Assembly (NCBI GenBank): GCA_028826165.1
Contig: JAPDFW010000062.1
Span: 155,644-219,643, forward strand
Length of the DNA stretch: 64,000 nt
Source of the DNA: Anaeramoeba ignava BMAN
Lineage: Eukaryota; Protista; Anaeramoebae
Reading direction: 5' to 3'
Shown here: piece after piece, positions 6,726 to 64,000 of the stretch
How positions within the stretch are numbered: the first letter of the stretch is position 1
Layout of the letters: the number at the start of each line of letters is the position of its first letter
The notes under the pieces: generated by a model
Database searches by the model: none
What the model was told of the DNA's origin: nothing
Seen by the model: only the letters and a program-made list of their open reading frames with translations
Position numbers and translations under genes: made by a program

Positions 6726-7521
6726 TTATTTTTTTTAAAAAATAATAAAAATGAAAATGATGAAATAAAAAAATTTTTTTCTTTTTAAATTAATTTTTCA
6801 AAATTAGAACTTCTTTTTTTTGAAGACAACTTAATATTTATTTTAAACAATAAATTATTTTTGATCATTTATTAAATTTATTTTTTAAATTATTTATTTT
6901 AAATTTATTTAACTTTTTCATTTATTCAGTTTATTTTCAATTAAATTTATTTATTTAATTAAATTTATTCCAAATTATTTTAAATTATTTAATTAAATTT
7001 ATTTTTTTATTAAATTTATTCTAAATTATTTAATTAAATTTATTCTAAATTATTTTATTAAATTTATTCTAAATTATTTATTAAATTTATTTTAAATTAT
7101 TTAATTAAATTTATTCTAAATTATTTAATTAAATTTATTCTAAATTATTTAATTAAATTTATTCCACTTTTTTTATTTATTTATTTTAAATTATTTAATT
7201 AAATTTATTTTAAATTATTTTTTTAAATTAAATTTTATTCCAAATTATTTTATTAAAAACATTTGACTAAATTGATTTTGAAATTAATTAAAACATTTGA
7301 CTAAATTGATTTTGAAATTAATTTTGAAATTTGTTTTGAATTTATTCCGTTTTTTAGCTTTAAAAAGAAAATGAAAAAAAGAATGAATTTTGAAATGAAT
7401 TTGAAATCAATTTTGAAATGAAATTTGAAATCAAATTTGAAATGAATTTGAAATGAATTTTTGAAATGAATTTGAAATCAAATTTAAAATCAAATTTGAA
7501 ATGAATTTGAAATGAAATGTT

Positions 7522-9020
7522 TTAAATGAAAAAAGTTTCAAGTTCATCTATCTCCCATGATTTAGGTGAACCAGCTAAATAACTTTTCGCTTCATTTGTT
7601 CCTTGTTCAATTCCATCAGGCAACTCAAAACTAACTCCAAAATTTGAAACACCACCTTTAAATGATCTTTCAAACGAAAAATCTGAATAATATTCATTTC
7701 CTAAATCAGAACTTAATATTCCTCTTCCGAAACTTGGAAGTAAACCTAAATGATCATACCAGAGAACATAATCTACTTCTTCTTGTTTAACTGGAAACTT
7801 CATAGGTTCTCTATCATTCTTATCATTTCTTAATGAAAAAATAAATGCATCTGGATCAGGAATAAATCCATTATCTCCATAATCAACACTCCATTTAGAT
7901 CTATCCTCTGTCCATCCAGCTTTGGTATATCCTCCAAAAATGAAATTATCTGTTGTTTTAGCAATAACTAATGCTTTTCCTTTTTCCATAACTCTTTCAC
8001 CCCATAATTTAGAATTAAATCCATCTCTTTTTGTTGAAAATCCTTTCTTCATTTTAGAGAGAAATTCATTATCATTTATCCATTCTTTTAATTTTCTGAA
8101 ATCTTTTGACTTTCTTTAATTATTGTTGAATCAATTCTAATTCTTGATTTGAAAATGAATGATTTTTCATTTTGACTTTCTTTTTCAATAAATTCTTCTG
8201 GATTTTCAAGTTTTTGGAATTCAATTAGTTTTTCTTTAATATCATTTGGAATTAAATCTTCTTCTTCTTTTAAAGTGTTTTCAAGTTCTTCTTTTGAGAA
8301 ATCAACAAATCTGATCTTATCAATAACATTTGAAATTTGTTTTTGTAATTTTTCTTTTTCTTCTTTATCAAGTTTTTGATTTTCTTTTTCTTGATTTAAA
8401 TTAACTTTATGTTTTCCCCATTTCATTAATGATTCAAAAATTTCAAGTTCATTTGTGAAAATTTCATCATTGGATAATATTGAATTTAAATGATTTTCTT
8501 CAAGTTCAACAAAAAACGGAGTTTTGATAAATTCATGAAAATTTGCTAAAAGAAATTGATAAGCAGAATCAAATAATTGATTGAAATTCACTGATTCAGA
8601 AAATTTAAGAACATCAACAACAATCTCAAGTTGTAAATTGTTTTGAATAAAGCTTAAAGTAATTTCAATTAATTCATCAATTAAGTACTTTGTTGAAAAA
8701 ATTAAAATTTCGATTGCATTTTCTAAATTAATTCCAATTTTTCCTGAATAAAAATAATTCAAAATTAAAGATATAATTGAACTTGAAAAATCTTTTAAAA
8801 CAACTTTATTTTCTTGAAACTCTTTCATTTTGGAATTGAAAAGAGATTTAAAATATTGACTTCTTGAAGAAAGTATTGATTTATGAGTTTTAAATGTTAT
8901 TGGAATTGAATCTTCATTTTGTTGACAAATTATTTCAAAATCAAAATAATTTTCTTCTTGGTTTTCAAATAAAGTTTTTAAATCATTTGAAAGCTTTTCT
9001 AAATTTGAATAATTTTCCAT
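7522..9020 (-). pseudogene. BTB-BACK-TLDc protein, tandem copy 2, with a +2 frameshift near 8108 (pseudogene or assembly error)
   Basis: Near-identical to copy 1 (1499 vs 1497 nt); 'ttttgactttct' versus 'ttttatttct' splits it into ORFs 8088-9020 and 7522-8052. Confidence 0.75.
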
Positions 9021-11456: not shown

Positions 11457-13619
11457 ATGAATAAAATAATAATAAAAATAATACTTTCAATTTTAATAAT
11501 TCAAACAGTATTAAACACAAAATTAGTTTGGGTTGAAGAAGGAACAATAATAACAACAAACGGACAATCACAAGACAACTTTGGATTCAGCGTTAAAATC
11601 AGTGAAGATACTATTGTGTCCGGAGCACCACAAGCAACAATAGCAAACAAAAGCGGACAAGGAGCAGTTTATATATTTCAAAATAACGGAACAAATTGGA
11701 ATCAAATGCAAATTTTGACAGCTAGCGACGGAAAAGCTGGCGACAATTTCGGAAACAGTTTGGCTATCCAGGACTCAATTCTCGTCATCGGCGCTTATTA
11801 TTCTAACGTTTCCACTAACCATTCACAAGGAAAAGTTTATGTTTTCCAAAATAACGGAACAAATTGGATCGAAAGTCAAATTTTGACAGCTAGCGACGGT
11901 TCTTCTGGTGATTGGTTCGGAAAAAGCGTGGCAATCAATGGAAATTATATTGCGATCGGTGCGCAAAATGCGAATACAAGCGCAAACGGAGTCAATCAAG
12001 GAAAAGCTTATGTTTTCCAAAATAACGGAACAAATTGGAATCAAATGGAAATTTTGACAGCTAGCGATGGCGCTTCAGGAGATTGGTTCGGAACAAGCAT
12101 AGGTGCAAATGGGAACTATATTGTGATAAGCTCAGTCAGAGCAAATGTCAGCAATAACACTCAACAAGGAAAAGTGTATGTTTTTACAAATAACGGAACC
12201 AATTGGATCGAAAGTGAAATTTTGACAGCTAGCGATGGTGCTTCTGGAGACGCTTTTGGATCAAGTATTGCTATTCTCGCAAACGACATCATCATCGGAT
12301 CTCCAAAGGCAGAGGTCGGCACTAATGCAGACCAGGGCAAAGCGTATTACTACCAGAACAATGGATCGAGCTGGGTCCAGAAAAGTATTCTTGTGGGAAC
12401 TAACGGAGCAAAAGGCGATAATTTCGGTGCAAGTGTTGATGTTTCTTCTGAATATCTCATTGTTGGCGGTCCAAGAGCAGCCGTCGACGGAAAAACCGAC
12501 CAAGGAAAAGCATGGATGTTCAGCAAACAAGGCGGCGATTGGACAAGTGATGGTGAGGTTGTTTCTAGAGATGGGCAAGCCCACGACAACTTCGGAAGTA
12601 GTGTGAGTATTTCTGTCAACCGCTCTGCAGTCGGTGCTTTTGGCGCAGAAGTCGGCCAGAACACGGAACAGGGAAAGACTTATTTTGTGGGACTTGTTGA
12701 AGCGCCTCCGCCAGTTACGATTGATTTTTGCGGTGCAATGTTTTCGCAATTCAATTGCACTTGGGAAGATCTTGGAAGTGACATTTCTTATGACATCAAT
12801 TACAACGGAAACTGGCAAAATATCAATAATTCGCAGTATAACGGAACAAGTTACACAAAAGTGTTTGGATCACCAGAATTTACTGATATCACAGGAAACG
12901 TTGATTATTCTGTGCAAATCCGAGGATGTAACACAACAACAACAGCATGTGGAGATGGATCAACAGTTTACAATGTGTTGACACGAATTGACGCAGTAAA
13001 GACTTTATCCGGAATTCCAAGTGGAGATTACATTGATTTATCATGGAACTATCCAGATGTTCCAATGGAAAACAGTGTACCAAAGTTGAATCACTATTTG
13101 ATTTCTTATAAGGGAACGGGACCAACATCAATGGTGTCAGTTTCAAATATTACTTTGACAGCTAGAATTTCCAATTTAACAACAACAGAACAATATGCCA
13201 TCAAGATTTGGGCCTGCAGAACCGCTCTTTGCACAGGTGAGGATGCTGGAGAGGATAGTTCAATTGATGTCACAACCTCATTTGGAACTGTAAATGATCT
13301 CTATTGTGTTAGTTCAGGCTTCACTAGTTTGTATTGTTCTTGGTCTCCTCCTCAATCCACTTTTGTTCCTTATTTCTATAATCTTACTTATATTACCTCA
13401 ATGCCTAGTGAAAATGGTACGGAAATTGTTAACTCTACCCAGGAAATGTTCGATATTTCTTATCCTCTTCGTCCTTATACTGTCTATCTTTCTGCTTGTA
13501 ATCAGGATTCTTATTGTGGTATTCTTTCTCAATATGATCTTTATGCTGGTTATAGTTCAGCTTCTTTTGTTTCTTTTGTCTTTTGGTTTGTTGCGTTACT
13601 TTTTGTTTTTGTTTGGTAG
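11457..13619 (+). CDS. Cell-surface protein: signal peptide, ~7 FG-GAP (integrin-alpha-type beta-propeller) repeats, ~3 fibronectin-III-like domains, C-terminal hydrophobic GPI/TM tail
   Basis: Repeats of LTASDGxxGDxFGxSVAI...IGA...QGKVYVF; FN3-like W/Y patterns (FNCTW..YSVQIRGC, IDLSW..YAIKIWAC, LYCSW..YTVYLSAC); hydrophobic C-terminus; intronless. Confidence 0.88.
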   Translation: MNKIIIKIILSILIIQTVLNTKLVWVEEGTIITTNGQSQDNFGFSVKISEDTIVSGAPQATIANKSGQGAVYIFQNNGTNWNQMQILTASDGKAGDNFGNSLAIQDSILVIGAYYSNVSTNHSQGKVYVFQNNGTNWIESQILTASDGSSGDWFGKSVAINGNYIAIGAQNANTSANGVNQGKAYVFQNNGTNWNQMEILTASDGASGDWFGTSIGANGNYIVISSVRANVSNNTQQGKVYVFTNNGTNWIESEILTASDGASGDAFGSSIAILANDIIIGSPKAEVGTNADQGKAYYYQNNGSSWVQKSILVGTNGAKGDNFGASVDVSSEYLIVGGPRAAVDGKTDQGKAWMFSKQGGDWTSDGEVVSRDGQAHDNFGSSVSISVNRSAVGAFGAEVGQNTEQGKTYFVGLVEAPPPVTIDFCGAMFSQFNCTWEDLGSDISYDINYNGNWQNINNSQYNGTSYTKVFGSPEFTDITGNVDYSVQIRGCNTTTTACGDGSTVYNVLTRIDAVKTLSGIPSGDYIDLSWNYPDVPMENSVPKLNHYLISYKGTGPTSMVSVSNITLTARISNLTTTEQYAIKIWACRTALCTGEDAGEDSSIDVTTSFGTVNDLYCVSSGFTSLYCSWSPPQSTFVPYFYNLTYITSMPSENGTEIVNSTQEMFDISYPLRPYTVYLSACNQDSYCGILSQYDLYAGYSSASFVSFVFWFVALLFVFVW

Positions 13620-33887: not shown

Positions 33888-35511
<1,624 letters not shown>

Positions 35512-35682: not shown

Positions 35683-38600
35683 ATGAATTCAGCAGTAAAT
35701 TCAACAACAACAAAACAAATAGAAAATTTAAGTAAAACAAAATAACAAAATAACAAAATAACAAAATAAAAAAATAACAAAATAAAAAAAAATAATTTTT
35801 AACTCTTTTTATTTCCTTTTTTTTAATTTTATTTAAATTTTTAGAACAATTACCATTAAAAGATTTATTTGATTTAATGATTAATTTCTCAAATGATGAA
35901 AATATTCAAGAACAACTTATTCTTGAAATAAGAAAGAGATCCAAATACAAAAGTAAATTCAAATTCAAAATCAAATTCAAAATCAAAATCAAAATCAAAA
36001 TCAAAATCAAAATCAAAATCAAAATCAAAATCAAAATCAAAATCAAAATCAAAATCAAAATCAAAATCAAAATCAAAATCAAAATCAAAATCAAAATCAA
36101 AATCAAAATCAAAATCAAAATCAAAATCAAAATCAAAATCAAAATCAAAATCAAAATCAAAATCAAAAAATCAAAATCAAAATCAAAATCAAAATCAAAA
36201 TCAAAATCAAAATCAAAATCAAAATCAAAATCAAAATCAAAATCAAAATCAAAATCAAAATCAAAAAATTAAATTATATTTTTTATTGAAATAAAAATAG
36301 AAAATGCAAATGAAATTGTTGAATTAAAAGGAATTGAAATAATAATTAAATCAATGAATAATTTCTCAAATAATCAAGATATTCAAGAAAATGGATGTTT
36401 CGCTTTAGCAAATATTGCTCTTGAAGAAAGTAAATTTATTTTTCTTAAATCAAAATCAAAATCAAAATCAAAAATCAAAATTAAAATCAAAATCAAAATC
36501 AAAATCAAAATCAAAATCAAAATCAAAATCAAAATCAAAATCAAAATCAAAATCAAAATCAAAATCAAAATCAAAATCAAAATCAAAATCAAAATCAAAA
36601 TCAAAATCAAAATCAAAATCAAAATCAAAATCAAAATCAAAATCAAAATCAAAATCAAAATCAAAAATCAAAATCAAAAATCAAAAATCAAAATCAAAAA
36701 AAAAAATCAAAATCAAAATCAAAAATCAAAATCAAAATCAAAATCAAAAATCAAAATCAAAATCAAAAAAAAATCAAAATCAAAATCAAAAATCAAAATC
36801 AAAAATCAAAAATCAAAATTCAAAATCAAAATTAAAATCAAAATCAAAATCAAAATCAAAATCAAAATCAAAATCAAAATCAAAATCAAAATCAAAATCA
36901 AAATCAAAATCAAAATCAAAATCAAAATCAAAATCAAAATCAAAATCAAAATCAAAATCAAAAATCAGAATCAAAAATCAAAAATCAAAATCAAAATCTA
37001 GAAATCAAAAATCAAAATCAAAATCAAAAATCAAAATCAAAAAAAAAAAATAAAAAATCAAAATCAAATTCAAAATCAAAACAAAAATCAAAATCAAAAA
37101 TCAAAATTAAATCAAAAATCAAAAATCAAAATCAAAATCAAAATCAAAATCAAAAACTCAAAATCAAAAAAATCAAAATCAAAATCAAAATCAAAATCAA
37201 AATCAAAATCAAAATCAAAATCAAAATCAAAATCAAAATCAAAATCAAAATCAAAATCAAAATCAAAATCAAAATCAAAATCAAAATCAAAATCAAAATC
37301 AAAATCAAAATCAAAATCAAAATCAAAATCAAAATCAAAATTAAAATCAAAATCAAAAAATAAATTATATTTTTTATTGAAATAAAAATAGAAAATGCAA
37401 ATGAAATTGTTGAATTAAAAGGAATTGAAATAATAATTAAATCAATGAATAATTTCCCAAATAATCAAGATATTCAAGAAAATGGATGTTTAGCTTTAGC
37501 AAATATTGCTCTTGGAAATGAAAGTAAATTTATTTTTCTTAAATCAAAATCAAAATCAAAATCAAAATCAAAATCAAAATCAAAATCAAAATCAAAATCA
37601 AAATCAAAATCAAAATCAAAATCAAAATCAAAATCAAAATCAAAATCAAAATCAAAATCAAAATCAAAATCAAAATCAAAAATCAAAATCAAAATCAAAA
37701 TCAAAATCAAAAATCAAAATCAAAAATCAAAATCAAAATCAAAATCAAAATCAAAATCAAAATAAAAATCAAAATCAAAATCAAAATCAAAATCAAAATC
37801 AAAATCAAAATCAAAAATCAAAATCAAAATCAAAATCAAAAATCAAAAATATTCAAGAAAATCAAAAATCAAAATCAAAATTCAAAATTCCAAATTTATT
37901 TTTGAAAAATCAAAATCAAAATCAAAATCAAAATCAAAATCAAAATCAAAATCAAAATCAAAATTCAAAATCAAAATCAAAATTCAAAATCAAAATCAAA
38001 ATCAAAATCAAATCAAAATCAAAATCAAAATCAAAATCAAAATCAAAATCAAAATCAAAATCAAAATCAAAATCAAAATCAAAATCAAAATCAAAATCAA
38101 AATCAAAATCAAAATCAAAATCAAAATCAAAATCAAAATCAAAATCAAAATCAAAAAATAAATTATATTTTTTATTGAAATAAAAATAGAAAATAGAAAT
38201 AAAATTGTTGAATTAAAAGGAATTGAAATAATAATTAAATCAATGAATAATTTCCCAAATAATCAAAATATTCAAGAAAATGGATGTTTAGCTTTAGCAA
38301 ATATTGCTGTTGAAGAAAGTAAATTTATTTTTCTTAAATAATCAAAATCAAAATCAAAATCAAAATCAAAATCAAAATCAAAATCAAAATCAAAATCAAA
38401 ATCAAAATCAAAATCAAAATCAAAATCAAAATCAAAATCAAAATCAAAATCAAAATCAAAATCAAAATCAAAATCAAAATCAAAATCAAAATCAAAATCA
38501 AAATCAAAATCAAAATCAAAATCAAAATCAAAATCAAAATCAAAATCAAAATCAAAATCAAAATCAAAAAATAAATTATATTTTTTATTGAAATAAAAAT

Positions 38601-41600
38601 AGAAAATAGAAATGAAATTGTTGAATTAAAAGGAATTGAAATAATAATTAAATCAATGAATAATTTCCCAAATAATCAAGATATTCAAAAAAATGGATGT
38701 TTAGCTTTAGGGAATATTGCTGTTGAAGAAAGTAAATTTATTTTTCTTAAATCAAAATCAAAATCAAAATCAATCAAAAAATCAAAAAAAAATCAAAATC
38801 AAAATCAAAATCAAAATCAAAATCAAAATCAAAATCAAAATCAAAATCAAAATCAAAATCAAAATCAAAATCAAAATCAAAATCAAAATCAAAATCAAAA
38901 TTAAAATCAAAATCAAAATCAAAATCAAATTCAAAATCAAAATCAAAAATCAAAATCAAAATCAAAATCAAAAAAAAATAAAATCAATTTTTCAAAAATA
39001 AAAATCAAAATCAAAATAATAATTAAATCAAAAATCAAATTTCTCAAAAAAAAATCAAAATAAAATCAAAATCAAAATCAAAATCAAAATCAAAATCAAA
39101 ATCAAAATCAAAAAAAATTTAAAATCAAAATCAAAATCAAAATCAAAATCAAAATCAAAATCAAAATCAAAATCAAAAAATAAATTATATTTTTTATTGA
39201 AATAAAAATAGAAAATACAAATAAAATTGTTGAATTAAAAGGAATTGAAATAATAATTAAATCAATGAATAATTTCCCAAATAATCAAGATATTCAAAAA
39301 TATGGATGTTTAGCTTTAGCAAATATTGCTGTTGAAATGAAAAGAAAATCAAAATTTATTTTTCAAAATCAAAATCAAAATCAAAATCAAAATCAAAATC
39401 AAAATCAAAATCAAAATCAAAATCAAAATCAAAATCAAAATCAAAATCAAAATCAAAATCAAAATCAAAATCAAAATCAAAATCAAAATCAAAATCAAAA
39501 TCAAAATCAAAATCAAAATCAAAATCAAAAAATAAATTATATTTTTTATTGAAATAAAAATAGAAAATAGAAATAAAATTGTTGAATTAAAAGGAATTGA
39601 AATAATAATTAAATCAATGAATAATTTCTCAAATAATCAAGATATTCAAAAATATGGATGTTTAGCTTTAGCAAATATTGCTTTTGAAGAAAGTAAATTT
39701 ATTTTTCTTAAATAATCAAAATCAAAATCAAAATCAAAATCAAAATCAAAATCAAAATCAAAATCAAAATCAAAATCAAAATCAAAATCAAAATCAAAAT
39801 AAAAATCAAAATCAAAATCAAAATCAAAATCAAAATCAAAATCAAAATTAAAAAATCAAAATCAAAAATCAAAATTTTTTCCCAAAAATCAAAAAATGGA
39901 AATAAAATTGTTGAATTCAAAAAAAAATTTGAAATCAAAAATCAAAATCAAAATAAAATCAAAATCAAAATCAAAATCAAAATCAAAATCAAAATTCAAA
40001 ATTAAAATCAAAATCAAAATCAAAATCAAAATCAAAATCAAAATCAAAATCAAAATCAAAATCAAAATCAAAATCAAAATCAAAATCAAAATCAAAATCA
40101 AAATCAAAATCAAAATCAAAAATTAATTTATATTTTTTATTGAAATAAAAATAGAAAATAGAAATGAAATTGTTGAATTAAAAGGAATTGAAATAATAAT
40201 TAAATCAATGAATAATTTCCCAAATAATCAAAATATTCAAGAAAATGGATGTTTAGCTTTAGCAAATATTTTTGAAGAAAGTAAATTTATTTTTCTTAAA
40301 TAATCAAAATCAAAATCAAAATCAAAATCAAAATCAAAATCAAAATCAAAATCAAAATCAAAATCAAAATAAAAATCAAAATCAAAATCAAAATCAAAAT
40401 CAAAATCAAAATCAAAATCAAAATCAAAATCAAAATCAAAATCAAAATCAAAATCAAAATCAAAATCAAAATCAAAATCAAAAATAAATTATATTTTTTA
40501 TTGAAATAAAAATAGAAAATAGAAATAAAATTGTTGAATTAAAAGGAATTGAAATAATAATTAAATCAATGAATAATTTCTCAAATAATCAAAATATTCA
40601 AAAATATGGATGTTTAGCTTTAGCAAATATTGTTTTTGAAATGAAAGTAAATATATTTTTCTTAAATAATCAAAATTAAAATCAAAATCAAAATCAAATT
40701 CAAAATCAAAATCAAAATCAAAATCAAAAATAAAAATCAAAATCAAAATCAAAATCAAAATCAAAATCAAAATCAAAATCAAAATCAAAATCAAAATCAA
40801 AATCAAAATCAAAATCAAAATCAAAATCAAAATCAAAATCAAAATCAAAAAATTAAATTATATTTTTTATTGAAATAAAAATAGAAAATAAAAATGAAAT
40901 TGTTGAATTAAAAGGAATTGAAATAATAATTAAATCAATGAATAATTTCCCAAAAATCAAAAATCAAAAAATTCAAGAAAATGGATGTTTAAAAATCTTA
41001 CTTTTGAATAAAAGTAAATTTATTTTTCTTAAATCAAAATCAAAAATCAAAAATCAAAATCAAAATCAAAATCAAAATCAAAATCAAAATCAAATTCAAA
41101 ATCAAAATCAAAATCAAAATCAAAATCAAAATCAAAATCAAAATCAAAATCAAAATCAAAATCAAAATCAAAATCAAAAAATCAAAATCAAAATCAAAAT
41201 CAAAATCAAAATCAAAATCAAAATCAAAATCAAAATCAAAATCAAAATCAAAATCAAAATCAAAATCAAAATCAAAAATCAAAAATCAAAAAATTAATTT
41301 ATATTTTTTATTGAAATAAAAATAGAAAATAGAAATAAAATTGTTGAATTAAAAGGAATTGAAAAATAATAATTAAATCAATGAATAATTTTCCAAAATA
41401 ATCAAAATATTCAAAAAATGGATGTTTAGTTTTAGCAAATATTGCTTTTGGAGAAAGTAAATTTATTTTTCTTAAATAATCAAAATCAAAATTAAAATCA
41501 AAAAAATCAAAATCAAAATCAAAAAAATTCAAAATCAAAAATCAAAATCAAAATCAAAATCAAAATCAAAAAAATCAAAATCAAAATCAAAATCAAAATC

Positions 41601-44600
41601 AAAATCAAAATCAAAATCAAAATCAAAAAATCAAAATCAAAATCAAAATCAAAAATAATTATATTTTGAAATTGAAATAGAAAAGAAATGAAAATAAAAT
41701 AAAATCAAAATTAAAAAATTGAATAAAATAATAATCAAGAAAATCAATGAATAATTTTTCCCAAATAATCAAATATTCAAAAAAATGGATGTTTCAAAAT
41801 CAAAATCAAAAATAAAAATTTTTCAAATCAAAATCAAAATAAAAATCAAATCAAAATCAAAATCAAAATCAAAATCAAAATCAAAAATCAAAAATCAAAA
41901 TCAAAATCAAAAAAAATCAAAAAAAATCAAAATCAAAATCAAAAAAATCAAAATCAAAATCAAAATCAAATCAAAATCAAAAAAATCAAAAATCAAAATT
42001 AAAATCAAAATCAAAATCAAAATCAAAAATCAAAAATAATTTATATTTTTTATTGAAATAAAAATAGAAAATAGAAATGAAATTGTTGAATTAAAAGGAA
42101 TTGAAATAATAATTAAATCAATGAATAATTTCCTAAATAATCAAGATATTCAAGAAAATGGATGTTTAGCTTTAGCAAATATTGCTGTTGAAGAAAGTAA
42201 ATTTATTTTTCTTAAATCAAAATCAAAATCAAAATCAAAATCAAAATCAAAATCAAAATCAAAATCAAAATCAAAATCAAAATCAAAATCAAAATCAAAA
42301 TCAAAATCAAAATCAAAATCAAAATCAAAATCAAAATCAAAATCAAAATCAAAATCAAAATCAAAATCAAAATCAAAATCAAAATCAAAATCAAAATCAA
42401 AATCAAAATCAAAATCAAAATCAAAATCAAAATCAAAAATTAATTTATATTTTTTATTGAAATAAAAATAGAAAATAGAAATAAAATTGTTGAATTAAAA
42501 GGAATTGAAATAATAATTAAATCAATGAATAATTTCCCAAATAATCAAAATATTCAAGAAAATGGATGTTTAGCTTTAAGGAATCTTACTATTGAAGAAA
42601 GTAAATTTATTTTTCTTAAATAATCAAAATCAAAATCAAAATCAAAATCAAAATCAAAATCAAAATCAAAATCAAAATCAAAATCAAAATCAAAATCAAA
42701 ATTAAAATCAAAATCAAAATCAAAATCAAAATCAAAATCAAAATCAAAATCAAAATCAAAATCAAAATCAAAATCAAAATCAAAATCAAAATCAAAATCA
42801 AAATCAAAAAATAATTTATATTTTTTATTGAAATAAAAATAGAAAATAGAAATAAAATTGTTGAATTAAAAGGAATTGAAATAATAATTAAATCAATGAA
42901 TAATTTCCCAAATAATCAAGATATTCAAGAAAATGGATGTTTAGCTTTAAGGAATCTTACTATTGAAATGAAAGTAAATTTATTTTTCTTAAAATCATCA
43001 AAAATCAAAAATCAAAATCAAAAATCAAAATCAAAATCAAAATCAAAATCAAAATCAAAATCAAAAATCAAAATCAAAAATTAATTTATATTTTTTATTG
43101 AAATAAAAATAGAAAATAGAAATAAAATTGTCAAAATAAAAGGAATCAAAATAAAAATTAATCAAAATCAAAAATTTCAAAAATCAAAATATTGAAAGAA
43201 AATAGAAAATGTTTGCAAAAGCAAAATAAAATCAAAATGAAATGAAAATGAAAGAAAAATTTATTTTTCTTAAATCAAAAATCAAAAATCAAAAATCAAA
43301 ATCAAAATCAAAAATCAAAAATCAAAAATCAAAATCAAAATCAAAAATCAAAATCAAAATCAAAATCAAAATCAAAATCAAAATCAAAATCAAAATCAAA
43401 AATCAAAATCAAAATCAAAATCAAAATCAAAAAATCAAAATCAAAATCAAAATCAAAATCAAAAAAATCAAAATTAAAATCAAAATCAAAATCAAAATCA
43501 AAATCAAAATCAAAAATCAAAAATCAAAAATCAAAATCAAAAATAAATTTATATTTTTATTGAAATAAAAATAGAAAATAGAAATGAAATTGTTGAATTA
43601 AAAGGAATTGAAATAATAATTAAATCAATGGATAATCAAATAAAAAATCAAAAAAAAAGATATTCAAAAAATATGGATGTTTATTTTTCTTAAATCAAAA
43701 TCAAAATCAAAAATTAAATTCAAAATTTTTCAAAAATTAAATAATCAAAATCAAAATCAAAATCAAAATCAAAATCAAAATCAAGATCCAAAAATCAAAA
43801 TCAAAATCAAAATCAAAATCAAAAAATCAAAATTAAAAATCAAAAATCAAAAATCAAAATCAAAATCAAAATCAAAATCAAAATTAAAAAAAATCAAAAT
43901 CAAAATCAAAATCAAATTCAAATTCAAAATCAAAATCAAAATCAAAAAAAATCAAAATCAAAAATTAATTTATATTTCAAAATCAAAATAAAAATCAAAA
44001 TCAAAATCAAAATCAATTAAAAAATCAAAAATCAAAATCAAAAATCAAAATCAAAAATCAAAATCAAATTCAAAATGCAATTAAAAAATCAAAAATCAAA
44101 ATCAAAAATCAAAATCAAAAATCAAAATCAAATTCAAAATGTAATGTTTAGCTTTCAAAAATTTAAAATCAAAAAATCAAAATTCAAAATCAAAATCAAA
44201 ATCAAAATCAAAATCAAAATCAAAATCAAAATCAAAATCAAAATCAAAATCAAAATCAAAATCAAAATCAAAATCAAAATCAAAATCAAAATCAAAATCA
44301 AAATCAAAAAATTAATTTATATTTTTTATTGAAATAAAAATAGAAAATAGAAATAAAATTGTTGAATTAAAAGGAATTGAAATAATAATTAAATCAATGA
44401 ATAATTTCCCAAATAATCAAGATATTCAAAAAATGGATGTTTAGCTTTAAGGAATCTTACTATTGAAGAAAGTAAATTTATTTTTCTTAAATAATCAAAA
44501 TCAAAATCAAAATCAAAATCAAAATCAAAATCAAAATCAAAATCAAAATCAAAATCAAAATCAAAATCAAAATCAAAATCAAAATCAAAATCAAAATCAA

Positions 44601-47600
44601 AATCAAAATCAAAAAAATCAAAATCAAAATCAAAATCAAAAATCAAAATCAAAATCAAAATCAAAAATCAAAATCAAAATCAAAATCAAATTAAAAAATC
44701 AAAATCAAAAATTTAAAATAAAAATCAAAAATTAAAAAAAAAAATCAAAATAAAATCAAAATCAAAAATAAATTATATCACATTGAAATAAAAATAGAAA
44801 ATAGAAAATGAAATTGTTCAAAAATCAAAGGAATCAAAATAAAAATTAAATCAATGAATAATTTCCCAAATAATATTCAAGAAAATGGATGTTTAGCTTT
44901 AAAAAATCAAATCAAAATGAAAATAAAAAATCAAAATCAAAATCAAAATCAAAATCAAAACCAAAATCAAAATCAAAATCAAAATCAAAATCAAAATCAA
45001 AATCAAAATCAAAATCAAAATCAAAATCAAAATCAAAATCAAAATCAAAAGAAAAATGTAAAAATCAAAATCAAAATTAAAAAAAATCAAAAATCAAAAT
45101 CAAAATCAAAATCAAAATCAAAATCAAAATCAAAAATCAAAATCAAAATCAAAATCAAAATCAAAAATCAAAATTCAAAATCAAAATCAAAATAAGATCA
45201 AAATCAAAATCAAAAATCAAAAATCAAAATCAAAATCAAAATCAAAATCAAAAATCAAAATCAAAATCAAAATCAAAATCAAAATCAAAATCAAAATCAA
45301 AATCAAAATCAAAATCAAAATCAAAATCAAAATCAAAATCAAAATCAAAATCAAAATCAAAATCAAAATCAAAATCAAAATCAAAATCAAAATCAAAAAA
45401 TTAATTTATATTTTTTATTGAAATAAAAATAGAAAATAGAAATAAAATTGTTGAATTAAAAGGAATTGAAATAATAATTAAATCAATGAATAATTTCCCA
45501 AATAATCAAGATATTCAAGAAAATGGATGTTTAGCTTTAAGGAATCTTACTATTGAAGAAAGTAAATTTATTTTTCTTAAATCAAAATCAAAATCAAAAT
45601 CAAAATCAAAATCAAAATCAAAATCAAAAAAATAATTTATATTTTTTATTGAAATAAAAACAGAAAATAGAAATAAAATTGTTGAATTAAAAGGAATTGA
45701 AATAATAATTAAATCAATGAATAATTTCCTAAATAATCAAGATATTCAAAAATATGGATGTTTAGCTTTAGCAAATATTGCTGTTGGAAATGAAAGTAAA
45801 TTTATTTTTCTTAAATCAAAATCAAAATCAAAATCAAATTGAAAATCAAAATCAAAATCAAAAATTATATTTTTTATTGAAATAAAAATAGAAAATCAAA
45901 ATAAAATTTCCGAATTAAAAGGAATTGAAACAATAATTAAATCAATAAATAATTTCCCAAATAATTTCAAAATTCATCAATGGGGATTTTTAACTTTACT
46001 TAATATTTCTGATAATAATGAAGGTAAACAATTAAAATCAAAATCAAAATCAAAATCAAAATCAAAATCAAAATTAAAATCAAAATCAAAATCAAAATCA
46101 AAATCAAAATCAAAACCAAAATTAAAATCAAAATCAAAATATAAATCAAAATCAAAATCAAAATCAAAATCAAAATCAAAATCAAAATCAAAATCAAAAT
46201 CAAAATCAAAATCAAAATCAAAATCAAAATCAAAATCAAAATCAAAATCAAAATCAAAATTAAAAATCAAATTCAAAATCAAAATCAAAATCAAAATCAA
46301 AATTAAAATTAAAATCAAAATCAAAAACCAAAATCAAAATCAAAATCAAAATCACAATTAAAATTAAAATCAAAATTAAAATCAAAATTAAAATCAAAAT
46401 TAATTTATATTTGTTATTGAAATAAAAATAGAAAATACAAATGAAATTTCCGAATTAAAAGGAATTGAAATAATAATCAAATCAATGAATAATTTCCCAA
46501 AAGTATCAAAAATTCAAGAATATGGAAGTAAAATTTTATTTAATTGTTCTTTTTCAAATAAAGGTAAAAAAAAGAAAAAAAGTTTTTTTAAAGAATTAAA
46601 AAACCAAAAACAAAAAAAAATGAAATGATAATTAATTTGAAATAATATATTTTGTTTAAATAGAAAATCAAATGAGAATTAAAGAATTAAATGGAATTGA
46701 AACAATTAAAAAAGCAATGAATATTTTTCCAAATCATAAATTAATCCAAAAATTTGGAATTTTAATAAAATTCAATTTAAATCCTGAAGATAGTAATTTA
46801 AAAAAATTAAAAAAATTAAAAAATTAAAAAATTAAAAAATTAAAAAAATTAAAAAATTAAAAAATTAAAAAATGAAATCTTTTTTTTTTGAAATAGTAAA
46901 TCAAAATGAATTAATTATAATAAAAGGATTTAATGAAATTGAAAAAATGGAAGAATCATTATCATCATCATCAACTTTAGAAGATCCAAATTTTCTCTCA
47001 AAAATTGATATTTTAACCAAAAAAATTAACAAAATGAAAAAAGGTAAATTAAAATCAATTTCCAAAAAAAAAGAAACCAATTTATTTAATTAAATAATTT
47101 TTTACATAATTTTTCCAAAATAGAAAAAATAAATAAACAAAAAAATGATATTTGGGAATTTGATATGAAAATGTTTCCTTCAAATAAACATCAACAATTT
47201 CAAAAAATTGAAATGAAATTAATTGAAATTGAAAATGAAAATGAAAATGAATATGAATATGAAAACGAAAATGAATTTCAAATCAAACAAATTGTTTCTT
47301 CAACCCGTTTCAAAAATTTCCTTTATTATAATGAACAATTATTTGAAGAATCAAATCAAAATTCAAATAAACGAAAAAAAATTGGAATTGAAAATATTAA
47401 AAAAGTATCTGTTGGATTTGATATTGAAACAATTTTAACAAGAGAAGGAAAAGTATTTGCAAAAGGAAAAAGAATTAATTTAAATTTACTGAATGAATAT
47501 ATTGAAATATCAGAATTGATCAAAGATAGAAAAGAAGAAATAATTGAAGATATTATTTGTGGGAAAGATTCAGTTTATTTATTAAGTTCAAAAAAAAATG

Positions 47601-48892
47601 TTTATGGAATTGGATCAAATGAATATGGGCAACTTGGAATAAATTTACCTAAAAAAGTTGAAGAACCAATTTTGATGAAACAAGATATTTACAAAATATT
47701 TTCAGGAAATTGCTCAAATGGAGTTTTTCTTTTAAATTCCAAACAAGAATTATTTTCATGTGGAGATAATAAATATGGACAACTTGGATTAGGAACAAAA
47801 ATATTTTCCAATGCTACATCATTAATTCAAATCGAAAACATACCAAAAGGCAAAATAAATGATATTCAAATGGGAATTTTTCATTCTATAATGATGATTG
47901 AAGAAGAAAATGGAAAAAGAAAACTTTATTCATGTGGTCATCATTTATATAATGGACTTGGTGAAAATGAAATGATGAAAGAATTCAAAGAAATCAAAGC
48001 AAATTTGATTGAAAATGATAATATTAAAGAAATTTCAGTTGGTAAATATCATAGTTTGATCTTAACAACACAAGGGAAATTAATTGGTTTTGGACAAAAT
48101 GAAAATGAAAACCAAAACCAAAATTTAAATCCAAATGAAATTATATTATTTCAAATTAAAGTTCCAGATTTATTATTATATGATATTTCTAGTTATCATA
48201 TATTTTGTGGAGTTGAAAATTCATTTCTTTATTCTGCATTTTTTTCAAGTTTTACAGATGATTTTCTTCAATTATTCAAAAGAAAAGAATTTTGTGATGA
48301 TATTTTTACAACGAAGAATGGAGAAATCATATCAGCACATAAATTAATTCTTGAATTTCGAATAGGAAGTCAAATTGAAGAATTTCGAGAAACAATAACA
48401 GAAAAAACCATTGAAGAAGCAAATCAAATATTTGAAATTGTTTATGGAAATACGAAAATTGAATCAGAAGAATTAAAAAATCAAATAATTGAAGGATTTA
48501 ATATATATATTCCAATGACAGAATCGATATCAGAAATATATTTTGAAGAAAAATCAAAAGATTTGATTATTTTGGGGAAAGAAAAAAACATTACATTTGA
48601 TAAATTAATATTGATTGCCAGAAGTAAATTATTTCGAGATAAATTTTTATTAATGAATGAAAAAGAATTTAAAGAATATAAAGAATTTAAAGAAAATATT
48701 CAAATAAGTGATAAAACAATTGAAATTATGAAATATTGGATTTATACAAATCAAATTGAAGAAGGAACTGAAATTAACAGAGAGGTATTACAAGAATTAA
48801 ATGAAGCAAATTCGTATTTCCAATTAAATCAATCAATTCCAAATTTAATTGATTTAGCAAATGAAATATTTAATGAAATGAATGAAAAATGA
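35683..48892 (+). CDS. Armadillo-repeat array - RCC1 - BTB protein with one ARM repeat per exon
   Basis: Exons 35683-35731 and 35845-35952 (cap); clean ARM exons 36301-36429, 37392-37523, 38190-38318, 38603-38731, 39564-39692, 40155-40280, 42068-42196, 42472-42600, 45433-45561, 45664-45795, 45892-46023, 46432-46563, 46664-46792; damaged ARM exons starting 39212, 40516, 40885, 41326, 42843, 43113, 43575, 44344, 44798; linker 46897-47043; last exon 47124-48892 (RCC1 [21 protein letters not shown]; [14 protein letters not shown]). Phase-1 GT-AG introns throughout. Confidence 0.85.
35955..46400. repeat. Higher-order tandem array: ARM exon plus (AAAATC)n intron with conserved ends
   Basis: Repeated donor flank GTAAATTTATTTTTCTTAAAT and acceptor flank TTATATTTTTTATTGAAATAAAAATAG around (AAAATC)n cores of variable length. 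Confidence 0.95.
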
Positions 48893-58591: not shown

Positions 58592-60349
58592 TTAATTTTT
58601 AAATTTATTAATTAATAAATCAAATAAATTTGGATTTGTTTGATTTAATTGAAAATAATTAATTCCAATTTCAATTTCATCAATTATTTCTTGTGTAATT
58701 TGAATTTCATCTTTAATTTGATTTGAATAAATCCAATATTCTAATATTTGAAATGATTTATCACTTAATTCACTATAATCTGTAAATTTAGTAGAATCTC
58801 CTTCTGTTACAGATAAAAACTTTTCTCGATATAATTCACTTCTCATTATTAATATTAATTTTGGAAATTTGTATTGTTTTTCTTTTCTTTCAATAATAAT
58901 ATCTTTTACTTCTTCAAATTCAATTAATTCTTTCATTTTTTCTTCTATTGATCCAAATAAATTCATATCAATTTCAATTTCTTCATATAATTTTGGATTT
59001 ATTTTGGAATTATTTGAATAAATAATTTCAAATATTTGATTTGATTCTTTAATTGATTTATTTGAAATAATTTCTTTAAGTTTTTCAATTTGATTTTCAT
59101 CTTGTCCAATTATTGTTTCTAATATTAATTTATGAGCTGAAATTATTTCTCCATTTTCTGTTTTAAATGAAATATTACAAAATTCTTTTCTTCTAAATAG
59201 TTTTATCAAATCTTCTTCAAGATTGGAAAAAGAAGAAAGGAAAGGAGAATAATAAAGAAATGATTTATTAAATCCACAAGAAAGATGATAATTAGAAATA
59301 TTTTCATTAAATCTTAATTTAGGAAGTTCAATTTGAATTGGAATTAGTTGATCTTTTGTATTTCCAGTTCCTAATTGACCAAAAGAATTAATTCCAAATG
59401 CTATTAATTTCGAATTAGATGTTAAAATCAAAGTATGAGAACTTCCAACAGAAATTTCAAGAATATTATCATTTTCAAATAAATATGATTTGATTTCAGT
59501 AAATTCATAAGTATTTTCATCTTCGCCAAGCCCATTATATTGATAATCTCCACATGAATAAAGTTTTCTTTTTGGGTTTTGATTTTGATTTTCAATCAAC
59601 ATTATTGAATGAAAATATCCACATTTAATATCAATTATTTTGCCTTTTGGAATATTTTGTATTTTGGTTACTTTATGGATTTTTGTTTCTTCTTTTCTTG
59701 ATTCTCCTAATCCAAGTTGACCATAATAATTATTTCCGCATCCAAATAATTCTTGATTTGAATTTAAAAGAAAAACAGTTCCTGAATTATTTCCTGAAAA
59801 TATTTTAGAAACATTTTTCATCATTAAAATTGGTTTTTCTGTTTCTTTAAATGTTTTAGAATCAAAACCAAGTTGAGCATATTCATTTGAACCAATTCCA
59901 TAAACATTTTGATTTGAAGTTAATAAGTAAACTGAACAAGCTCCAGAAACAATATCTTCAATTATTCTATCATTTATATCTTCAATTAATGATGAAATAT
60001 TGATAAATTCTTTTGGATTATTTGGATTAATATTTTCTCCTTTGGCAAATACATTTCCTTCTTTTGTTAAAATAGCTTCATTTAGATTACCAACAGTTAC
60101 TTTTTGAATATTTTCAATTTGGATTTTTTGAGGATTTTCATTTGAATCTTCTAAATATTCTATTGCTTTTCCATTTTTAAAAAGGAAAATTGTTGAATAA
60201 TCTCCTGTTGAAATTTGTTTAATTTGTTTTTCATTTTCATTTTCATTTTCATTTTCAAATTTAAATTGAATTGGTTTTCTTATTGAATCTGATTCATTTT
60301 TGAAAAATTTTGGAGAGTCATTTACACCAAAAAATAAACAATCATTCAT
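58592..60349 (-). CDS. RCC1-repeat + BTB protein, tandem copy A (intronless, 585 aa)
   Basis: RCC1 blades (GSNEYAQLG, CGNNYYGQLGLG, CGYFHS, VGSSHTLILT, FGINSFGQLGTG); BTB-like [14 protein letters not shown] and second BTB-like FPKLILIMRSELY..ILEYWIYS. Confidence 0.9.
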   Translation of the reverse strand: MNDCLFFGVNDSPKFFKNESDSIRKPIQFKFENENENENEKQIKQISTGDYSTIFLFKNGKAIEYLEDSNENPQKIQIENIQKVTVGNLNEAILTKEGNVFAKGENINPNNPKEFINISSLIEDINDRIIEDIVSGACSVYLLTSNQNVYGIGSNEYAQLGFDSKTFKETEKPILMMKNVSKIFSGNNSGTVFLLNSNQELFGCGNNYYGQLGLGESRKEETKIHKVTKIQNIPKGKIIDIKCGYFHSIMLIENQNQNPKRKLYSCGDYQYNGLGEDENTYEFTEIKSYLFENDNILEISVGSSHTLILTSNSKLIAFGINSFGQLGTGNTKDQLIPIQIELPKLRFNENISNYHLSCGFNKSFLYYSPFLSSFSNLEEDLIKLFRRKEFCNISFKTENGEIISAHKLILETIIGQDENQIEKLKEIISNKSIKESNQIFEIIYSNNSKINPKLYEEIEIDMNLFGSIEEKMKELIEFEEVKDIIIERKEKQYKFPKLILIMRSELYREKFLSVTEGDSTKFTDYSELSDKSFQILEYWIYSNQIKDEIQITQEIIDEIEIGINYFQLNQTNPNLFDLLINKFKN

Positions 60350-60601
60350 TTTATTTTTTTATTTTTAATTTTTTAATTTTTTTAAAAAGAAAAAAATGAA
60401 AAAAAAATTTTGGAATTTTTAATTTTAATTTTGATTTTAATTTTAATTTTAATTTTAATTTTAATTTTAATTTTAATTTTAATTTTGAATTACATTTTGA
60501 TTTTGATTTTAATTTTAATTTTAATTTTAATTTTAATTTTTAATTTTAATTTTTAATTTTGATTTTAATTTTAATTTTTAATTTTAATTTTAATTTTGAT
60601 T

Positions 60602-62423
60602 TTAATTATTAAATTTCCTAATTAATAAATCAAATAAATTTGGATTTGTTTGATTTAATTGAAAATAATCAATTCCAATTTGAATTTCATCAATCATTTC
60701 TTGTGTAATTTGAATTTCATCTTTAATTTGATTTGAATAAATCCAATATTCTAATATTTGAAATGATTTATCACTTAATTCACTATAATCTGTAAATTTA
60801 GTAGAATCTCCTTCTGTTACAGATAAAAACTTTTCTCGATATAATTCACTTCTCATTATTAATATTAATTTAGGAAATTTATATTGTTTTTCTTTTCTTT
60901 CAATAATAATATCTTTTACTTCTTCAAATTCAATTAATTCTTTCATTTTTTCTTCTATTGATCCAAATAAATTCATATCAATTTCAATTTCTTCATATAA
61001 TTTTGGATTTATTATTCTATTTGAATAAATAATTTCAAATATTTGATTTGATTCTTTAATTGATTTATTTGAAATAATTTCTTGAAGTTTTTCAATTTGA
61101 TTTTCATCTTGTCCAATTATTGTTTCTAATATTAATTTATGAGCTGAAATTATTTCTCCATTTTCTGTTTTAAATGAAATATTACAAAATTCTTTTCTTC
61201 TAAATAGTTTTATCAAATCTTCTTCAAGATTGGAAAAAGAAGGAGGAGAATAATAAAGAAATGATTTATTAAATCCACAAGAAAGATGATAATTAGAAAT
61301 ATCTCCATTAAATCTTAATTTAGGAAGTTCAATTTGAATTGGAATTGTTTGTTTTTTTGTATCTCCAGTTCCTAATTGACCATTTGAATTATATCCAAAT
61401 CCAATTAATTTTCCTTTTTCTGTTAAAATCAAAGTATGATAGCTTCCAACAGAAAAATCAAGAATATTATCATCATTTTCAAATAAAGATGATTTGATTT
61501 CAGTAAATTCATAAGTACTTTCATCTTCTCCAAGTCCATTACATCGAGAATTTCCACATGAATAAAGTTTTCTTTTTGGATTTTGATTTTGATTTTCATT
61601 TTCAATCAACATTATTGAATGATAATTTCCACATTGGATATCAATTATTTTGCCTTTTGGAATATTTTGTATTTTGGTTAATTTTTGGATATTTATTTCT
61701 TTTTTTCTTGATTCTCCTAATCCAAGTTGACCATAATCATTCAAACCACATGAAAATAATTCTTGATTTGAATTTAAAAAAAAAACTTGAGTTGAATCAT
61801 TTCCTGAAAATATTTTAGAAATATTTTTCATCATTAAAATTGGTTTTTCTGTTTTTTTAAGTGTTTCAGAATCAAAACCAAGTTCACAATTTCCATTTGA
61901 ACCAATTCCATAAGCATTTTGATTTGAAGTTAATAAGTAAATTGAATCTCTTGAAGAAACAAAAATCTTCAATTATTCTATCATTTGTATCTTTAATTAA
62001 TAATGAAATATTGATAAATTCTTTTGGATTTTTTGAATTAATATCTTTTCCTTTGGCAAATACATTTCCTTCTTTTGTTAAAATAGCTTCATTTAGATTA
62101 CCAACAGTTACTTTTTGAATATTTTCTTCAATTTGGATTTTTTGAGGATTTTCATTTGAATTTTCTAAATATTCTATTGCTTTTCCATTTTTAAAAAGGA
62201 AAATTGTTGAATAATTTCTTGTTGAAATTTGTTTAATTTGTTTTTCATTTTCATTTTCATTTTCATTTTCATTTTCATTTTCATTTTCATTTTCATTTTC
62301 ATTTTCATTTTCATTTTCATTTTCATTTTCATTTTCAAATTGAATTGGTTTTGTTATTCTGTATGATTCATTTTTGATAAGTTTTGGTTTTTTATTCCGA
62401 CCAAAAAATAAACAATCATTCAT
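60602..62423 (-). CDS. RCC1-BTB protein, tandem copy B, with a +1 frameshift near 61963
   Basis: ORFs 61884-62423 and 60602-61972 together align end to end with copy A; one extra base in an A run. Confidence 0.8.
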
Positions 62424-63001
62424 TTTCTTTATTTATTTTTAATTTTTTAATTTTTTTAAAAAGAAAAAAATGAAAAAAAAATTTTGGAATTTTTAATTTT
62501 AATTTTAATTTTAATTTTAATTTTAATTTTAATTTTAATTTTAATTTTAATTTTGATTTTAATTTTAATTTTGATTTTAATTTTAATTTTAATTTTAATT
62601 TTGATTTTAATTTTAATTTTAATTTTGATTTTAATTTTAATTTTAATTTTAATTTTAATTTTAATTTTAATTTTAATTTTTAATTTTAATTTTAATTTTA
62701 ATTTTAATTTTGATTTTTGATTTTAATTTTTAATTTTAATTTTAGTTTGGAATTTTAATTTTGATTTTGATTTTTAATTTTAATTTTAATTTTAATTTTG
62801 ATTTTGATTTTTAATTTTAATTTTAATTTTAATTTTAATTTTAATTTTTAATTTTAATTTTAATTTTAATTTTAATTTTAATTTTAATTTTAATTTTAAT
62901 TTTAATTTTAATTTTAATTTTGATTTTTAATTTTAATTTTGATTTTAATTTTAATTTTAATTTTAATTTTAATTTTAATTTTGATTTTTGATTTTTGATT
63001 T

Positions 63002-64000
63002 TTAATTTTGATTTTTAAATTTATTAATTAATAAATCAAATAAATTTGGATTTGTTTGATTTAATTGAAAATAATTAATTCCAATTTTAATTTCATTAAT
63101 TATTTCTTGTGTAATTTGAATTTCTTCTTTAATTTGATTTGAATAAATCCAATATTCTAATATTTGAAATGATTTATCACTTAATTCACTATAATCTGTA
63201 AATTTAGTAGAATCTCCTTCTGTTACAGATAAAAACTTTTCTCGATATAATTCACTTCTCATTATTAATATTAATTTAGGAAATTTGTATTGTTTTTCTT
63301 TTCTTTCAATAATAATATCTTTTACTTCTTCAAATTCAATTAATTCTTTTCATTTTTTCTTCAATTGATCCAAATAAATTCATATCAATTTCAATTTCTT
63401 CATATAATTTTGGATTTATTTTGAAATTATTTGAATAAATAATTTCAAATATTTGATTTGATTCTTTAATTGATTTATTTGAAATAATTTCTTTAAGTTT
63501 TTCATTTTGATTTTCATCTTGTCCAATTATTGTTTCTAATATTAATTTATGAGCTGAAATTATTTCTCCATTTTCTGTTTTAAATGAAATATTGCAAAAT
63601 TCTTTTCTTTTAAATAGTTTTATCAAATCTTCTTCAAGATTGGAAAAAGAAGGAGGAGAATAATAAATAAATGATTTGTTATATCCACAAGAAAGATGAT
63701 AATTATAAATATCTTCATTAAATCTTAATTTAGGAAGTTCAATTTGAATTGGAATTGTTTGTTTTTTTGTATCTCCAATTCCTAATTCACCATTTAAATT
63801 ATATCCAAATCCAATTAATTTTGAATTAGAAGTTAAAATCAAAGTATGTTCATTTCCAACAGAAAAATCAAGAATATTATCATCATTTTCAAATAAATAT
63901 GATTTGATTTCAGTAAATTCATAAGTATCTTCAGTTTTGCCAAGCCCATTAAATTCCCAATTTCCGATGGATAAAGTTTTCTAGTTTGATTTTGATGATT
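63002..64000 (-). CDS. RCC1-BTB protein, tandem copy C (5' part outside the window; +1 homopolymer frameshift near 63348)
   Basis: ORFs 63336-63842 and 63002-63262 are near-identical to the C-terminal halves of copies A and B. Confidence 0.8.

Follow-up and report, generated by a model that had tools for sequence, protein, structure and literature searches.

An armadillo-repeat exon array ending in an RCC1-BTB-BTB module in Anaeramoeba ignava, a member of a diversified family of candidate cullin-3-type substrate receptors

Results

Architecture of the array gene

The window analysed here is a 64,000-nucleotide stretch of the genome of the protist Anaeramoeba ignava BMAN (contig JAPDFW010000062.1), and one plus-strand gene, with its ATG at 35683 and its stop at 48890-48892, spans 35683-48892 of it. 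Most of this gene is an array of armadillo (ARM) repeats encoded one per exon, followed by an intronless last exon, whose RCC1 and tandem BTB domains had no place in the original prediction. The original prediction, made from the sequence letters, counted about 22 ARM exons plus about five remnants; the array is real and about 24 ARM exons are recognisable (10 clean core exons, 10 damaged ones and four caps), but only the 10 clean core exons are intact and the remnants are likely to be assembly errors. The features of the gene are as follows, with lengths in nucleotides (nt) and P0039 denoting the public protein model described below.

35683-35731 (+): first coding exon with the ATG, 49 nt, ending in phase 1 before GT (predicted from sequence)
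35845-35952 (+): divergent N-terminal capping exon, 108 nt, phase 1-1
36301-36429 (+): clean ARM exon, 129 nt
37392-37523 (+): clean ARM exon, 132 nt
38190-38318 (+): clean ARM exon, 129 nt
38603-38731 (+): clean ARM exon, 129 nt
39212-39345 (+): ARM exon, 3' end corrupted, clean donor lacking, a probable assembly error
39564-39692 (+): clean ARM exon, 129 nt
40155-40280 (+): clean ARM exon, 126 nt
40516-40646 (+): ARM exon, 131 nt, frame lost near the 3' end
40885-41013 (+): ARM exon, 129 nt, in frame, partly blended with AAAATC
41326-41456 (+): ARM exon, 131 nt, several insertions or deletions in homopolymer runs
41657-41794 (+): ARM exon, heavily blended
42068-42196 (+): clean ARM exon, 129 nt
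42472-42600 (+): clean ARM exon, 129 nt
42843-42973 (+): ARM exon, 131 nt, otherwise identical to the 45433 exon
43113-43254 (+): ARM exon blended with AAAATC
43575-43680 (+): ARM exon, truncated or blended
44344-44471 (+): ARM exon, 128 nt, one base short of the 45433 exon, otherwise identical
44798-44915 (+): ARM exon blended with AAAATC
45433-45561 (+): clean ARM exon, 129 nt, in P0039
45664-45795 (+): clean ARM exon, 132 nt, CAG acceptor, in P0039
45892-46023 (+): divergent ARM exon on the cap side, 132 nt, in P0039
46432-46563 (+): divergent ARM exon on the cap side, 132 nt, in P0039
46664-46792 (+): C-terminal capping ARM exon, 129 nt, in P0039
46897-47043 (+): linker exon, 147 nt, phase 1-1, in P0039
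47124-48892 (+): intronless last exon, RCC1-like propeller then two BTB/POZ domains, stop TGA (Pfam, PDB sequence search, AlphaFold and Foldseek)
35953-46431 (unstranded): (AAAATC)n microsatellite introns with a locus-specific acceptor flank and a donor flank
near 37838, 38970, 39884, 43914 and 44035: partial exon-like remnants in introns

All 10 clean core exons are 126, 129 or 132 nt long, have AG and GT at their borders and run from phase 1 to phase 1, as had been predicted, and the same phase is kept by the 49-nt first exon, the 147-nt linker exon and the four divergent capping repeats, which do lie at both ends of the array (35845-35952, 45892-46023, 46432-46563 and 46664-46792). In this gene, as in the sister arrays described below, each repeat is one symmetric exon, and any exon could therefore be skipped without loss of frame. 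The proposed (AAAATC)n introns were also borne out, perfect microsatellite making up 56% of the gene's intron letters, and a scan of the locus for the flank patterns found 21 acceptor and 16 donor flanks. Upstream, a three-exon RRM-like gene (33888-35510, +) leaves a gap of about 170 bases to the ATG of the array gene, and hence only a very short promoter region.

The public partial model of the gene, KAJ5076258.1 (P0039, 838 amino acids, 'protein aardvark'), covers the 3' part only, i.e. the last five repeats, the linker and the RCC1-BTB exon, and by profile search begins at the 45433 exon. 'Aardvark' is an automatic label carried by many paralogues.

Damaged exons and remnants

Ten core exons (39212, 40516, 40885, 41326, about 41680, 42843, 43113, 43575, 44344 and 44798) are damaged by a frameshift, a missing donor or a blend with the microsatellite. 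Several depart from a clean copy by a single base, typically a loss, beside a homopolymer run, and in the blended ones 62 of 84 substitutions change T or G to A or C, i.e. towards AAAATC, whereas substitutions between clean exons are balanced. Of 13 damaged pieces, 8 contain the motif AAATCAAA, which none of the 10 clean exons has, and at the sister loci 337 of 356 called exons (20 loci) are in frame. The damaged exons and remnants thus look like probable consensus errors from misaligned long reads, and for this reason the exact exon number of the gene is uncertain. Three exons (42843, 44344 and 45433) are almost identical and splice flanks are intact at nearly every repeat copy. Nor is the array made up of a few exons over-expanded, because the residues of the clean copies are distinct.

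Transcripts

Of four sequencing runs, X1 and X3 are RNA, as judged by GT-AG introns that are missing from their contigs but present in X2 and X4. X1 and X3 contain 0.67 and 0.51 of the words of window positions 45400-48892, where exons make up 0.68, so the 3' part of the array gene is very likely transcribed. Splicing could be followed in a sister gene, L039, which has 23 clean exons and the same domain order as the window gene: RNA contigs join neighbouring exons exactly at the predicted borders and run from the last repeat through the linker into the RCC1-BTB exon. Four skip-type joints were seen, each of them mimicked by a true neighbour pair whose identical ends are longer than the mapped side, and the alternative splicing originally envisaged did not emerge from these canonical joints. 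This negative holds for the L039 contigs, and contigs drop rare variants.

A genome-wide family of sister arrays

The locus acceptor flank, which had been suggested as a probe for sister arrays, gave 20 genome matches that all lie inside this locus. Protein searches did find sisters: at least 40 clusters on about 29 contigs, from two genome searches with 1474 and 1637 first-look candidates, 150 being scored in each. Across 20 fetched loci and the window array, 374 repeat exons were called, of which 351 are symmetric with phase 1 on both sides; most measure 129 or 132 nt. The architectures are mostly BTB-ARM (N-terminal BTB in L032, L036, L041 and L045) or ARM-RCC1-BTB (the window gene, L034 and L039); BTB is present in most members checked and RING in others, and in three A. 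ignava public models (P0002, P0047 and P0154) the same ARM cassettes are fused to RING-kinase(-SH3). No description of the ARM cassette family was found in the Anaeramoeba genome paper, related papers or supplements.

Some sister arrays are very long (L033:1-10000 on the minus strand, L042 and L047), packing from 29 to 44 or more repeats into 10 kb, and L033 has a repeated multi-exon block with internal cap-like exons. A RasGEF-domain reading frame (L034:1349-2002) lies just upstream of the L034 ARM-RCC1-BTB gene on the same strand.

Related ARM proteins exist in other organisms, some with a U-box or RING, and both traced examples are intronless. These are metagenomic: an ARM plus RING gene (L051:5001-7916) beside a PARP gene on a gene-dense 70-kb contig, and a U-box plus ARM gene (L052:264-2645) on a 4-kb contig. 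Their helix-3 variable residues are similar to those of the A. ignava arrays.

Variation and selection on the third helix

Repeats vary at positions 26, 29, 30, 33, 36 and 40, plus position 2, whereas positions 27, 28, 31 and 35 are near-fixed. Those between 26 and 40 fall on helix 3, the long one, at i, i+3/4, i+7 intervals, on the face that in importin-alpha and designed ARM proteins lines the peptide groove around a conserved Asn37. The seven variable sites give 269 distinct codes in 301 exons.

Across 136 close exon pairs, the nonsynonymous rate (pN) at six variable sites was 0.171, compared with a synonymous rate (pS) of 0.051, a framework pN of 0.030 and 0.065-0.094 substitutions in the flanking introns, and pS at the variable codons was not raised (0.055 vs 0.050). 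When sites were picked on half of the arrays and measured on the remainder, median pN/pS was 3.17 (2.0-7.3) at variable sites vs 0.61. Codon models in IQ-TREE, which give relative rates only, placed groove codons at 2.3-5.0 vs 0.16-0.72 in nine arrays, and the window array alone shows the same trend in small numbers (9.5 changes per 101 sites vs 9.5 per 578).

How the arrays diversify

For 228 of 301 exons the nearest neighbour in sequence lies in the exon's own array, and identity drops with distance along arrays; together with the acceptor flank being confined to one locus, this indicates local duplication and homogenisation. Four-gamete failures stand at 0.16 for sites up to 5 bases apart and climb to 0.41-0.49 at larger distances, so exchange occurs inside exons too. 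Repeat number and content also differ between recent duplicates: L036 and L037 are 97.5% identical upstream, yet have 8 and 11 repeats with differing variable residues, L049 and L050 have 4 and 11, and L044 and L046 have 26 and 7 called repeats (the latter an undercount, a looser scan giving 18 pieces). Such differences, with diversifying selection on the binding face, are what brown-algal exon-shuffling genes display.

The idea that an ARM-based array generates binding diversity is thus upheld in its helix-3 variation, exon recombination and changes in repeat number, but two of the processes first proposed are not. Alternative splicing is discussed above. Microsatellite-driven shuffling was rejected as a necessity because sister introns hold only 0-26% microsatellite vs 56% in the window array and those sisters diversify alike, with the recombination signal inside exons. 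Nor do the intronic remnants appear to be biological relics; no antisense repeat exons were found among 21 loci, as opposed to about 410 sense matches.

Fold and identity of the protein

Exons were searched singly and folds were made on the public record P0039. The repeats are three-helix units of about 42 residues that stack as an ARM superhelix: residues 1-200 of P0039 are modelled by AlphaFold as H1-H2-H3 repeats with a predicted local distance difference test score of 97.6, and Foldseek aligns them to designed ARM proteins and APC-ARM with template modelling scores of 0.75-0.84. The repeat profile matches LRRK2, Vac8, ZYG11B and designed armadillo proteins in the PDB, the ARM domain of LRRK2 being the nearest repeat type among natural solved proteins, and Pfam ARM_LRRK2 is matched as well. 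Pfam ARM_ARMC5 scores 28.6 bits, below its curated cut-off of 79.9, and orthology to ARMC5 is therefore not indicated. Pfam scans of the array protein and of the family members scanned found no ROC-COR or NB-ARC.

The last exon matches the Pfam RCC1-like propeller and BTB (the latter at 36.4 bits against a cut-off of 20.5), and the C-terminal 229 residues fold as a tandem BTB whose best matches in AlphaFold and Foldseek analysis are fused POZ pairs. BTB and a putative substrate-binding domain are thus joined in one chain, as in CUL3 receptors. No BACK domain was found in the array protein, although one BTB-ARM member (P0022) has one. The RCC1-BTB-BTB module points to a cytosolic ubiquitin-ligase adaptor over a signalling receptor. 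The genome holds about 8 cullin loci, with cullins counted as a class, and a very large BTB expansion (3711 first-look candidates, the best 150 all above the Pfam cut-off) that is not named in the text of the genome paper.

Three stand-alone RCC1-BTB genes lie at 58592-63842 (-) of the window, two of them split by frameshifts; in the BTB part they share 46-47% identity with the array gene. The resemblance suggests that the array gene arose when ARM repeats became joined to one of a larger family of RCC1-BTB genes.

Discussion

With modest confidence, the window gene is read here as an ARM-RCC1-BTB-BTB cytosolic protein of about 20-24 repeats and one of a large A. ignava family of variable binders that looks like a natural library, germline-diversified cullin-3-type substrate receptors. 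In this model the inherited genome gains, loses and remixes repeats by unequal crossing-over and gene conversion with the frame kept, and selection would favour new groove residues; the ARM superhelix would then bind a variable target while the BTB domains recruit a cullin-3-type ligase, so that the target is ubiquitinated. The components of this model differ in strength. Germline diversification under selection is very probable and the role as a cullin adaptor, drawn by analogy, is reasonably probable, while the proposal that the targets are foreign (bacterial prey or symbiont effectors, viruses or mobile elements), though the most plausible one, is tentative and may well fail.

The closest parallel in mode of evolution is with the brown-algal exon-shuffling candidate receptors, which share one repeat per exon in constant phase, repeat-number differences among recent duplicates, diversifying selection on the binding face and multigene birth and death. 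They differ in that the present family is built on armadillo repeats in phase 1, carries BTB, RCC1-BTB-BTB or RING-kinase rather than ROC-COR or NB-ARC, and belongs to an unrelated lineage, the Metamonada, and in that no splice variants emerged here and no antisense repeat exons were found in 21 loci, such exons being present in Ectocarpus ROCO genes (PMC3341825). The array gene works like these candidate receptors but is no member of them, having another repeat, another effector and no antisense exons. Arthropod Dscam likewise has tandem arrays of similar exons, but there they are mutually exclusive and here neighbours are spliced in series.

On the effector side, ARMC5 (ARM plus BTB; PMC9226510, PMC9462479) and IBTK (ankyrin, RCC1 and BTB; PMC4447969) are proven CUL3 receptors. 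ARMC5 and the plant proteins ARIA and ABAP1 share ARM substrate-binding repeats joined to BTB, but their genes are conserved and number one or a few, their self targets are fixed and their repeats are divergent. IBTK and RCBTB1/2 share the RCC1-like propeller and BTB in one chain, IBTK having in addition a repeat domain that is ankyrin rather than ARM and being a conserved single gene. The F-box and MATH-BTB expansions of nematodes, said to have been described by Thomas in 2006, are large groups of ubiquitin-ligase adaptors that reportedly combine a conserved cullin-binding part with a positively selected substrate part and proposed foreign targets. They differ in that one-exon repeat cassettes do not make up their substrate domains. 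LRRK2-type and ZYG11B-ZER1-type ARM proteins and Dictyostelium Aardvark, from which the automatic name derives, have the same type of repeat sequence and fold, but no ROC-COR, LRR or catenin context was seen here.

Several observations weigh against this reading. The match of the BTB model to transcription-factor POZ domains equals or exceeds that to CUL3-bound ones, and some family members have neither BTB nor RING. Helix 2 also has a variable residue, position 17, which is mostly S or A. Selection is possibly overstated, as pN/pS was counted rather than estimated as a likelihood omega, among recombining repeats in a genome that is 80% adenine and thymine, and the data come from one assembly rather than from a comparison of strains or haplotypes.

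The arrays might instead be scaffolds for the amoeba's own partners, such as trafficking small GTPases, which they would bind much as Rabs are bound by the ARM domain of LRRK2, with BTB serving only to oligomerise. GTPase binding is common among RCC1-like domains, which would suit such a role, as would the LRRK2-like repeat type. Rab families are much expanded in Anaeramoeba (PMC11550330). Fixed partners predict conserved grooves, however, and the groove residues differ between adjacent repeats and between paralogues that are 97% identical; with ROC-COR also missing from every member scanned, this explanation seems unlikely. It is improbable, too, that one locus yields many repeat combinations per cell or clone, by exon skipping as in Dscam or by programmed DNA rearrangement. 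Every exon can be skipped in frame, brown-algal ROCO genes of similar layout have splice variants (PMC11378527), and the blended exons are places where long reads disagree on exon positions, as heterogeneity could cause; on the other hand, the L039 RNA joints are canonical with all four skips mimicked by neighbours, and 21 loci have no antisense or displaced exons, although contigs drop rare variants. An anticipatory repertoire for cell-internal immunity or symbiont control, in which a clone gains new ubiquitin-ligase specificities by recombining its cassettes or splicing them alternatively, is a long shot. Nothing shows one cell reshuffling its cassettes.

Two further explanations concern whether the variation is functional at all. 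Slippage-prone duplication with drift of the exposed helix face, i.e. largely neutral expansion, is very unlikely: the genome does amplify many families, BTB among them, and extreme base composition can depress synonymous change, but pN at variable sites is roughly double the substitution rate of the flanking introns and triple pS, other exposed positions are conserved and about 95% of sister exons are in frame. It is rather doubtful that the window copy is decaying, or its array mis-assembled in length, so that only the last five repeats and RCC1-BTB-BTB function, as in the 838-residue public model. That model does begin at the 45433 exon, the assembly shows damage in every second core exon on average and three exons are nearly identical, yet the damage has the pattern of consensus errors, the clean exons have distinct groove codes and nearly all copies retain intact splice flanks.

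If the preferred reading of germline-diversified substrate receptors is correct, the family would represent an independent metamonad origin of exon-per-repeat variable binders, on ARM and wired to ubiquitin ligases rather than signalling NTPases. It would be a natural counterpart of designed armadillo libraries, in which the same helix is varied, with hundreds of naturally selected binding modules, and a testable candidate for how a bacterivorous, symbiont-housing amoeba tells wanted from unwanted proteins. A clone-level repertoire, if true, would be the first of its sort in a single-celled eukaryote and the first to use armadillo repeats. Annotation largely hides the family, since public models miss most exons and show only five repeats for the window gene.

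Elsewhere in the window, tandem BTB-BACK-TLDc genes lie at 5229-9020 (-), the second split by a frameshift, and an intronless gene of higher GC content at 11457-13619 (+) probably encodes a surface protein, judging by its seven FG-GAP repeats, its fibronectin-III domains and its hydrophobic ends.

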